DNA of 64,000 nt, taken from NCBI GenBank assembly GCA_033442325.1, contig JAWQFM010000021.1, positions 531,413-595,412 on the forward strand, read 5' to 3'. Below, piece by piece: positions 39,662 to 41,753 of the stretch. Each line of letters opens with the position of its first letter. Positions within the stretch are counted from its first letter, which is position 1. Under the pieces are notes generated by a model. That model was given only the letters and a program-made list of their open reading frames with translations, did not search any database and was not told the DNA's origin. The position numbers and the translations under genes were made by a program. This DNA is from Salpingoeca rosetta. Its lineage: Eukaryota > Protista > Choanoflagellata.

Positions 39662-41753
39662 TCATGTGGGCGAGTATGGGGGCGGATCTTCCGAGATGGA
39701 AGCGCTTCGTAGGCTGACCATGCTCAGGCGTCGGCGTGCCGCCTCGATGGTGACTGGCTCCTGCTGCTCGGTGCCAGCCTGTGTGTGTGTGTGTGTGTGT
39801 GTGTGTGTGTGTGTGTGTGTGTGTGTGTGTGTGTGTGTGTGTGTGTGTGTGTGTGTGTGTGTGTGTGTGTGTGTGCGTGCGTGCGTGTGTGTGTGTGTGA
39901 GTGAGGGATGGCGTATTGGATGGTTCAAAACAACTTGCAATCATGCGTCAGGGGGCAACTTACCTGTTGTACCAACTGTTGCGCCGTGTCCATTAACGCG
40001 GGATCGCCACCAAGCACAAATGCCTGTCGGGTGTGAAGAAAAAAAATCACGCAGTGAACGAGTGGCTGGGGCAAACACACGCGTATGTCCAGCGCGTTTA
40101 CGCCAATACCAACGTCTGCTCGACATGCTGGGCAAATTTCACACCAGCGCACCTTGACACACTCGTTAACGCTCGCGCGCAATCGCAACAGCTCATTCTC
40201 TGCTTCCATATAGCGCACAAACACCTCCTGTGTGGGTATGTCGGTGTGTTGGTGTGCTGGTGAGGGGGAAGGTATCAAGCCCGGTCGAGTTCGGTGGCAG
40301 GCGAAAGGACAGGCGGACGAAACATCACCAGGAAGGATACAAACACCTCCCCCACCCCCCTCTCACACACACATACAACCACACCTGTGTTTTGTGGTCG
40401 ATAAGCGCTTGCAGTTCATCCTCAAGCTGTGAGAGCTGCGAAACCGTCACCTGGATACGTTCGTTCATCTGTTTGGGCAAGTGATGTGAGATGTGGCGCG
40501 AGAGGGCCGCGTTGAAGTGAGCACTGGCTTGGATGCTCGGATCACAAACATGTGCAGCATGTGCAGAGGACAGCCTCATTGTGCATGCTGACGAGCACGC
40601 ATGGGCGTGGCATGGGCATGACGCTGAATCACGTGTCCAGTGTCAATCGTTGATGTGGCTTCAACGGTACCTGTTGAATCTTGGTGGCCAGGGATGCCGC
40701 TGTTCCGCCTCTCCGCCCGCTCTTTCGCTGCTGCTCGCGCTGGAGCGACGCCAGCTGCCGATTCAACCGCTGCCGGTCACGCCGAAATGTGTCGCATATC
40801 CTCTCCTTGGCTGTGGGCGGCGCATGCGGCAGTTTGGGGGGAGGGGCGTTGAGGTCAATGAACGAGCAAAGCAGGGAGGCGAACAGGAGGGGAAGGGGAG
40901 GAAGCGAGCGAGCAGACATACAAACACACAGACAGAGCCAGAGAGCCAGAGAAACATGGACACGGGCACATTTATGCAGGCAGACATACAGACAGACAGA
41001 CACAAGGGTTTCTTACAGAGGATGTTCTCGAAGACTTGTCTCCTCGCCTTGATTCTGTCTCCGAGCGCCCGCTCGCGGTCAAGGAGCATAAACTGAATGG
41101 TGGCCACGGAACCCACGCGCTGCTGTACTTGCGGTGACTGCTTCTCCGCCCATTTCAGCAGGCACTTGTGGACTATGTGCGACAAACAAGACGGGGCACA
41201 GCAGCGGCGTGCATGAGCGGACACATGGCACATCCGTCACAGATGAACAACAAGAAACAGCAACCAAGTACGCACACAGACAGACAGGCAGACAGACACA
41301 CACACACACATGCAAACAAACAAACCAGCAAACAGGTGTACGAACGCACCTTCGTACTGGGCGTGGAGGTACGTCTTCCACGCTCGCTTGGCATTTGTGT
41401 CAGCTGCAATCAACTTCGCACAAGCACGAATGTGAGACTGAACAACACCGCATGCACAACTGTGTGTTCAAGCAAGCACCGAGTGCTGTTGTTGTCACAT
41501 GGCATTGCACGATGTCGACAGAGTTGCTTCATCAACACACGCATGGCTCACTTGCTGCAGGTCTTTGTGGCCCTGAAAAGCGCCTCGCAGAGAGGCAGAT
41601 GCCCTGATCAACGCAAAGCCAGAGCAAGACGCTTTCATGAGCACGTGTCCGAATGGGTGCGTGTGTGTGTGTGTGTTTGCGTATGCCCAACACCACGATC
41701 GGTCCACGGTCACATGGTGACATCACTCACATCCGCATCGACATGAGCTCCAT
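39662..41753 (-). CDS. Pil1/Lsp1 (eisosome)-like BAR-domain protein with a C-terminal PPPY motif
   Basis: Nine phase-compatible exons give KDLQQLIAADTNAKRAW...VHKCLLKWAEKQSPQVQ...GDRIKARRQVFENILSKER...KIQQMNE...HKTQEVF...CVKAF...EDPPPYSPT. This aligns almost without gaps to the remembered yeast Pil1 core. Confidence 0.65.

Follow-up and report, generated by a model that had tools for sequence, protein, structure and literature searches.

A Pil1/Lsp1-like BAR-domain protein with a PPxY tail, predicted from a spliced and expressed gene of the choanoflagellate Salpingoeca rosetta

Gene structure and transcript

A 64,000-nucleotide (nt) stretch of the Salpingoeca rosetta genome (GenBank assembly GCA_033442325.1, contig JAWQFM010000021.1, positions 531,413 to 595,412) was analysed, and this whole stretch is termed the window; all positions given below are those of the window. 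On its minus strand, from 41753 to 39662, lies a gene whose nine exons form a 771-nt reading frame of 256 amino acids (aa). The encoded protein very probably belongs to a holozoan branch of the Pil1/Lsp1 family of BAR-domain proteins. As a curved BAR dimer with a basic surface it would lie on acidic membrane, its PPxY tail open to a partner with WW domains. The window is about 55% G+C and contains many (CA)n/(GT)n tracts, and long open reading frames are absent from the region of the gene. Exon sizes are 23, 52, 64, 156, 140, 84, 75, 60 and 117 nt, and GT-AG is found at every intron border. An in-frame TGA precedes the ATG at 41753 by 10 codons, and no ATG intervenes. The protein starts with MELMSMRMASASLRG and ends with EDPPPYSPT. 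Features of the gene are listed in Table 1.

Raw reads of two RNA-seq runs and the contigs of two others were placed on positions 39950-41700. Six internal junctions are found exactly as modelled. In each run 13-43 reads with 7-20 different start points cover every one of them, and the two contig sets give the same result. Each internal junction skips CT..AC on the plus strand, i.e., GT..AG on the minus strand, and the strand of the RNA reads is that expected of a minus-strand mRNA. The two outer junctions, 41731|41603 and 39964|39778, were read from loose ends. The major mRNA has nine exons, and the gene is spliced and expressed as modelled. A first-pass annotation, made from the sequence letters, had proposed the nine small exons with this start and these coordinates, and the RNA junctions and loose ends bear it out; all peptides quoted in it are present in the spliced product.

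The public gene model differs at the 5′ end. PTSG_07872, an NCBI hypothetical protein of 260 aa (P0001 below), is letter-for-letter equal to an eight-exon model that starts at the ATG at 41638. This ATG was considered as the start codon and rejected, as the RNA reads place it inside intron 1. Read depth over positions 41602-41660 is 1.4 and 4.1 in the two runs, versus 23.5 and 49.6 in the adjoining exon bin, or about one tenth. Because RNA reads join 41731 to 41603, the N-terminus of the public model is in need of correction. The first 12 annotated residues are replaced by MELMSMRM and the remainder of the protein is the same. The corrected N-terminus (MRMASAS) agrees with that of the Microstomoeca orthologue (MAMMRMASASIRG).

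One contig (X4) is unspliced into intron 1 up to position 41648, and there may be a minor form of the transcript that retains intron 1. Read depth in two other introns is low but clear, 3-14 in intron 7 (40068-40126) and 0-6 in intron 6 (40245-40362), versus 17-47 in the flanking exon bins; a small contig, X5, crosses the border of exon 7 and intron 6. The reads in introns 6 and 7 probably represent unspliced precursor RNA.

Table 1. Features of the S. rosetta gene, in window coordinates
Feature	Position	Strand	Content	Basis
Exon 1	41731..41753	-	Start codon, MELMSMR and two bases of M8; ATGGAGCTCATGTCGATGCGGAT, then GTGAGT; absent from public model	Loose RNA-read ends at 41603 (21 and 45 reads, one contig) match plus strand 41731-41760
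Intron 1	41604..41730	-	Contains ATG 41638, the start codon used by PTSG_07872	
Exon 2	41552..41603	-	Pre-BAR motif ASASLRGAFQGHKDLQQ	Junction 41413|41552, 17 and 24 reads, 2 contigs; acceptor 41603 from loose ends
Exon 3	41350..41413	-	Helix 1	Junctions 41413|41552 and 41172|41350
Exon 4	41017..41172	-	End of helix 1 with conserved W; first half of helix 2 with R aligned to Pil1/Lsp1 R126	
Exon 5	40671..40810	-	Second half of helix 2 and basic tip loop GRRGG	RNA junctions
Exon 6	40385..40468	-	Helix 3	RNA junctions
Exon 7	40153..40227	-	Helix 3	RNA junctions
Exon 8	39964..40023	-	Short fourth helix; VIA-align alignment to Lsp1 passes through this helix	Junction 40023|40153
Exon 9	39662..39778	-	Disordered tail: RRRLS, PPPY, stop codon 39664-39662	Loose ends at 39963 match 39749-39778 (16 and 47 reads, 2 contigs)
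PPPY codons	39674..39685	-	PPxY motif of the type bound by WW domains	
BAR-domain span including introns	39964..41569	-	Residues 20-218 of the 256-aa protein	

Relatives and the sequence link to Pil1/Lsp1

P0001 was used for all searches and for folding; it differs from the corrected protein in its first 12 residues only. Residue positions below, other than those of the N-terminal segment before the GH motif, are in P0001 numbering, from which 4 is subtracted for the corrected 256-aa protein. In a word search with P0001 one relative was found, in Microstomoeca roanoka, with 49% identity. A two-species profile of the S. rosetta and Microstomoeca sequences was then compared with 1.84 billion representative sequences, and 27 proteins were detected at E ≤ 1e-3. 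These come from eight choanoflagellate species, six animal species and metagenome or read-assembly contigs; none of the 27 is an S. rosetta paralogue. A word-index search with a 20-sequence alignment returned four proteins, none of them fungal.

The choanoflagellate relatives are from Microstomoeca, Hartaetosiga, Salpingoeca infusionum, S. kvevrii, S. urceolata, Mylnosiga, Stephanoeca and Craspedida sp. UC1. Among animals, relatives are found in the sponge Sycon ciliatum (XP_065192865.1, on a 34-Mb contig), the mantis shrimp Oratosquilla oratoria (XP_076056445.1, 66-Mb contig), the clam Mactra antiquata (KAL4225376.1, 41-Mb contig), the sea slug Plakobranchus ocellatus (GFO41716.1), the ostracod Notodromas monacha and the amphipod Trinorchestia longiramus (KAF2344383.1). 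It should be noted that the automatic names of these proteins can mislead. Only the Trinorchestia fragment is named after Pil1/Lsp1 (“Eisosome component PIL1/LSP1, partial”), and “tropomyosin-like” and [quoted passage not shown] occur among the names, the Sycon (P0013) and Plakobranchus (P0015) proteins being cases in point.

The Pfam Pil1 family, PF13805, has a gathering score of 27 bits and is the best family for seven of the relatives. Three are above the gathering score (P0026 with 32.4 bits, the Plakobranchus protein P0015 with 28.7 and P0014 with 27.8), and four are below it (P0008 with 23.7 bits, P0022, P0007 and P0012). All these matches share a register that puts protein residue ~21-25 on profile position 57-58. 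A HMMER search against Pfam Pil1 had been proposed at the outset as a check; it thus gives significant matches for relatives, and none for the S. rosetta protein itself.

Profiles built from the relatives reach the yeast proteins of known structure. With a profile of all hits against PDB sequences, Lsp1 (3PLT) is the first match with E 9.1e-5, and the second match has E 0.066. With a profile of the animal sequences only, Lsp1/Pil1 take the first four places (E 6.3e-6, 1.3e-5, 0.021 and 0.035), noise setting in from 0.14. An hhalign comparison of the choanoflagellate profile with the animal one gives a probability of 99.9% and E 3.6e-35, and the 256 aligned columns extend from the N-terminal motif through PPPY. 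S. rosetta is therefore linked to yeast Lsp1 transitively, by steps that are each solid as judged from sequence profiles, and through the choanoflagellate and animal relatives the protein is homologous to yeast Lsp1/Pil1.

Predicted structure

AlphaFold2 models were made from two sequences, with a predicted local distance difference test score (pLDDT) of 75, and from a 22-sequence alignment, with a pLDDT of 87 and a predicted template-modelling score (pTM) of 0.74. In the latter the pLDDT exceeds 95 along the helices. Long helices span residues 25-59, 64-133 and 140-207 of the model; a short one (210-222) and a disordered tail follow. The predicted fold, with high confidence, is a three-helix BAR module followed by a short fourth helix.

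In a Foldseek search of the PDB, Lsp1/Pil1 are the first six matches for both models (E 2.3e-5 and 5e-6), and other BAR domains follow from E 2-3e-3; FAM92A has E 1.6e-2 versus 5e-6 for Lsp1. VIA-align, which is independent of Foldseek, was run against 48,161 chains. It places Lsp1 first with Z 15.2 (195 residues, 3.2 Å) and Z 15.0 (207 residues, with model residues 12-231 on Lsp1 42-268). The next matches are Vps5 (13.4), SNX5 and arfaptin (both 13.3), ACAP1 (12.7), FAM92A (12.2) and Bin1 (11.9), and identity in the alignments with Bin1, SNX5 and Vps5 is 6-10%. Searched by shape, the ESM Atlas gives a PF13805 cluster first (template-modelling score (TM) 0.63/0.86; root-mean-square deviation 2.3 Å over 181 residues). 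Searched by features, it gives an uncharacterised arthropod cluster (0.93) and then Lsp1 and Pil1 clusters (0.90 and 0.89), with Pil1 clusters making up 17 of 40 matches. An Atlas search limited to unnamed clusters made no addition. Structure comparison of the predicted models thus ranks Pil1/Lsp1 first by a modest margin, and the weight is carried by the agreement with the sequence profiles.

Other BAR families and coiled coils

Several results weigh against placing the protein with Pil1/Lsp1. P0001 alone has no PF13805 match in hmmscan against Pfam, even at E 10, and no match at E 10 in phmmer against PDB sequences. With the choanoflagellate-only profile, Lsp1 is the first PDB match, but its E of 0.036 is non-significant and level with noise, and the two-sequence profile does not reach Lsp1, meeting GCN4-type coiled-coil noise only. 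Because these two profiles fall short, the sequence link to Lsp1 runs through the animal proteins. On the structural side, TM-scores do not separate Lsp1 (0.47/0.56) from FAM92A (0.55/0.65) or ACAP1; the VIA-align margin of Lsp1 over other BAR domains is less than 2 Z units, and Z above 12 is common for long helical folds.

The protein could thus be thought to belong to another BAR family or to be of independent origin, its likeness to Pil1/Lsp1 coming from the shared BAR fold and helical composition. The failure of the single protein to match Pfam Pil1 and the marginal choanoflagellate-only result would fit such an origin, as would TM-scores to FAM92A and ACAP1 that equal or exceed those to Lsp1, and Z values of 12-13 for many BAR domains, close to the 15 of Lsp1. 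However, four kinds of search, not all on the same signal (hidden Markov model profile, Foldseek, VIA-align and Atlas), rank Lsp1/Pil1 first. None of the BAR, BAR_3, FAM92, Vps5, FCH and IMD Pfam families is significant in any member, the sole such match being BAR_3 with E 0.025 in one member. The S. rosetta protein has no Pfam match to the classical N-BAR and SNX-BAR families (PF03114, PF09325) and no PX domain. FAM92/CIBAR (PF06730) has no Pfam match in any member either, and CIBAR1 (8CEG) is reached by the choanoflagellate-only profile at E 8.4 only. The animal orthologues, moreover, pass the Pfam Pil1 threshold and are tied to the choanoflagellate proteins by the hhalign result and by shared introns (see below). 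Membership of another BAR family, or an independent origin, is on this evidence very unlikely.

The FAM92/CIBAR, arfaptin, SNX-BAR and amphiphysin proteins do share the overall crescent three-helix BAR fold with the model (Z 11.9-13.4; TM up to 0.55/0.65, for FAM92A). They differ in showing no significant sequence or profile match, in Foldseek E values about 400 times or more worse than that of Lsp1, and in alignments that end at the end of helix 3. The S. rosetta protein has no PX, PH or other partner domain.

A generic coiled-coil protein without BAR function must also be considered. The weak Pfam matches of the single protein are coiled-coil noise (best CorA, E 0.0096; DUF4686, Lebercilin and similar), and the GCN4-type coils met by the two-sequence profile are of the same kind. 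A Pfam scan of the eight exon peptides singly found no match, the pieces being too short. Against a generic coiled coil stands the AlphaFold2 model, which is a compact three-helix antiparallel bundle predicted with confidence along its helices and not a long two-stranded coil. The leading structural matches are all BAR domains, and the conserved W, R, E, GH and PPxY are not confined to heptad positions. A generic coiled coil is hardly credible in view of these features. Thus neither the SNX, FAM92 and amphiphysin BAR families nor a generic coiled coil gives a better score than Pil1/Lsp1, and the original suggestion of a Pil1/Lsp1-like BAR protein outside fungi is upheld, this family being the closest both by sequence profile and by structure.

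Conserved residues and the lipid pocket

Across the family alignment no variation occurs at L102 and E105, and very little at H24, L27, K42 and W58; among the choanoflagellates R95 does not vary either. Residues were mapped to Lsp1/Pil1 from the all-hits and animal-only profile alignments to natively numbered Lsp1. Kept positions are L30-I31 (L61-V62 of Lsp1), R39 (R70), W58 (W89), R95 (R126) and E105 (E136). Two blocks of alignment with Pil1 had been given in the first-pass annotation. The first, with 9 of 42 residues identical, is in the profile register to Lsp1, as its L-I falls on L61-V62 and its W on W89; the second falls in the correct helix but is shifted by seven residues from the profile-based alignment.

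In Pil1, R126, K130 and R133 hold the headgroup of phosphatidylinositol 4,5-bisphosphate (PI(4,5)P2), and R43, K66 and R70 are phosphatidylserine contacts (bioRxiv 10.1101/2023.08.25.554800). Two of the three PI(4,5)P2 pocket residues are changed in S. rosetta, E99 falling on K130 and L102 on R133, such that only R126 has a counterpart. T35 falls on K66, where most relatives have K, and R39 matches R70. The pocket changes and that at K66 are to be added to the points against a close likeness to Pil1. A basic residue, K92, is present one turn before R95. The protein has an isoelectric point of 9.7, helix 2 has 17 K/R versus 8 D/E, and the tip loop GRRGG is basic across the family. Residue comparison thus suggests that the lipid pocket of Pil1 is partly kept.

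The N-terminus is shorter than in Pil1, with 19 residues before the GH motif versus ~52. The folded N-terminus of Pil1 makes lattice contacts and is followed by an amphipathic helix with the aromatic sterol contacts F33, Y40, F42 and F50 (bioRxiv 10.1101/2023.08.25.554800). The lattice-contact segment, about 30 residues, has no counterpart in the S. rosetta protein. F17 is a possible match to F50, and the other three of the four aromatic residues have no match. Residues 5-17 have a moderate hydrophobic moment (0.5-0.57). The remaining N-terminal segment, R-x-ASAS-x-RGAF, resembles Pil1 R43-F50 (RRSAAGAF...), by eye only.

The PPxY tail

The PPPY near the C-terminus, pointed out in the first reading of the sequence as a ligand of WW domains, lies at the very end of the confirmed protein. 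Nearly every full-length member has a PPxY after its BAR domain, in choanoflagellates as well as in molluscs and crustaceans: PPPYSPT here, and PPPYSE, PPPYTP, PPPYSL, PPSYEE, PPAY and others elsewhere. It is the only feature aligned by hhalign in otherwise variable tails. To judge from this recurrence, the PPPY tail is no chance feature. PPxY is a standard ligand of group I WW domains, e.g., those of Nedd4/Rsp5-type ligases. Pil1 and Lsp1 are not known to have a PPxY motif.

A short PPxY in a disordered tail beside a membrane-targeting module is also seen in PY-motif adaptors of Nedd4/Rsp5 ligases, such as the arrestin-related trafficking adaptors and Ndfip, which recruit WW-HECT ligases through such motifs. 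The S. rosetta protein would resemble these adaptors in its layout. However its predicted membrane module is a BAR domain and not an arrestin fold or a transmembrane protein. The hallmarks of the branch are the short N-terminal R-x-(A/S)-S-A-S...G-H-x-(D/E)-L, the conserved W, the R at the R126 site, the E at the E136 site, the basic tip loop between helices 2 and 3, and PPxY.

Shared introns and the age of the branch

Exons of three animal genes (Mactra, Plakobranchus and Oratosquilla) were mapped on their contigs, the Plakobranchus map being without the middle of the gene. The animal genes are 14-19 kb long with kilobase-sized introns; that of Mactra is 16 kb with 11 introns. They code for 200-250 residues after PPxY, mostly in one big exon and without a Pfam domain.

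Of the eight introns in the S. rosetta gene, three have a Mactra intron at the identical alignment column and in the identical phase. Intron 1 (phase 2), which lies twelve residues before the GH motif, is also shared with Plakobranchus and Oratosquilla. Intron 3 (phase 1; V51 on A49 of Mactra) is also found in Plakobranchus. The third is intron 7 (phase 0; K202 on R202 of Mactra). About 0.1 coincidences are expected by chance, and a rough Poisson P is 2e-4. Given the chromosome-scale contigs and the shared introns, fungal contamination is ruled out.

The shared positions argue that the last ancestor common to choanoflagellates and animals already had the gene with these introns. It had been proposed from the sequence that an eisosome-type scaffold existed in the opisthokont ancestor and was lost in animals. 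Such an ancestral scaffold is conjectural, the lattice-contact segment being absent from the S. rosetta protein. The loss in animals does not hold, as relatives are present in a sponge, molluscs and crustaceans, several of them match Pfam Pil1, and introns are held in common with the S. rosetta gene. The relation to the fungal branch could be one of descent from the opisthokont ancestor or of old transfer.

The animal and other choanoflagellate orthologues share with the S. rosetta protein the N-terminal motif, the BAR core, the basic tip loop, the PPxY after the domain and intron positions. The animal orthologues differ in that they mostly have the long further tail described above, a K at the Pil1 K66 site and a better match to Pfam Pil1. 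None of the animal orthologues has been studied so far.

Eisosome scaffold or simpler membrane coat

The closest known system is that of Saccharomyces cerevisiae Pil1/Lsp1 (PF13805; PDB 3PLT, 8QB7, 8QB8). The S. rosetta model shares with it the three-helix BAR core and fourth helix (Z 15 over 195-207 residues, 3.2-3.4 Å, 15-16% identity), a collinear sequence match reaching from the segment that precedes helix 1 as far as helix 4, counterparts of R70, W89, R126 and E136, and a basic tip loop between helices 2 and 3. It differs in its N-terminus, ~30 residues shorter, in the residues at the K66, K130 and R133 sites, in standing itself under the Pfam threshold, and in having, instead of a long acidic C-terminal tail, a short tail with the conserved PPxY. 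The protein also belongs to cells without a fungal wall, and choanoflagellates are not known to have a wall of the kind that walled microalgae have.

A true eisosome scaffold would be a stable lattice on PI(4,5)P2-rich plasma membrane, with furrows that store membrane and shelter transporters as in yeast. Family and fold are shared with Pil1/Lsp1, the R126 counterpart, basic helix 2 and basic tip loop are kept, and the pre-BAR segment lines up, by eye only, with the amphipathic-helix region of Pil1. On the other side are the N-terminus without the lattice contacts, the possible match for only one (F50) of four aromatic sterol contacts, and the loss of K130 and R133. In a 2026 paper, which cites Lee 2015, eisosome furrows among microalgae are reported in walled cells only (PMC13353863), and this, too, speaks against such furrows in choanoflagellates. 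The missing lattice segment casts particular doubt on an eisosome-type scaffold, which is put forward here as a hypothesis and one that we regard as unlikely.

For the holozoan Pil1/Lsp1 branch member we infer a different mode of action. The protein would form a curved homodimer, by analogy with other BAR proteins. The basic face of the dimer, together with the N-terminal segment, would bind acidic lipids on a curved membrane, most likely the plasma membrane. The exposed PPxY tail would bind a WW-domain protein, for which a Nedd4/Rsp5-type ubiquitin ligase is the most plausible candidate. Ubiquitination might then control the scaffold, or the scaffold might bring the ligase to the coated membrane patch. 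Because the ~30 N-terminal lattice-contact residues of Pil1 are absent, a simpler membrane-bound adaptor or coat would be expected, rather than a yeast-type eisosome lattice.

Surroundings of the gene

Long (GT)n/(CA)n microsatellites occur in intron 8 (39780-39899) and in both flanks of the gene (41806-41892, 42044-42090 and 39535-39625). An imperfect CACAGACA-type repeat is present 3′ of the gene end. In a 296-aa open frame of the minus strand (38510-39400), a (GTT)n tract of about 60 bases (39286-39350) occupies the 5′ end and would be translated as a threonine run.

Significance

In the work of Olivera-Couto et al. (2011), Pil1/Lsp1 homologues were found in Dikarya only, significant matches were fungal only, and eisosomes were considered possibly confined to fungi (PMC3128537). 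Aggad et al. (2023) state that animals are without direct orthologues of Pil1 or LSP-1 (PMC10010689). No description of a Pil1-family protein outside fungi was found in the literature searched.

The present results describe an old holozoan branch of the family with a short N-terminus and a conserved PPxY tail. It is expressed in S. rosetta, one of the choanoflagellates, the group of single-celled organisms closest to animals, and several animal phyla have kept it. This places the family at least as far back as the ancestor of choanoflagellates and animals, and a concrete candidate is at hand for animal membrane domains that are eisosome-like or otherwise scaffolded by BAR proteins. That choanoflagellates and scattered animals keep a working eisosome-type coat, with a Pil1-like lattice, PI(4,5)P2-rich tension-sensitive domains and PPxY wiring to Nedd4-family ligases, is distinctly unlikely. 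If it were so, eisosome-like membrane compartments governing the turnover of transporters would be older than the divergence of fungi and animals and would persist in some animals. The conserved tail suggests a BAR scaffold linked directly to WW-domain ubiquitin ligases. Transfection and genome editing are available in S. rosetta, and the BAR-WW link is testable there.

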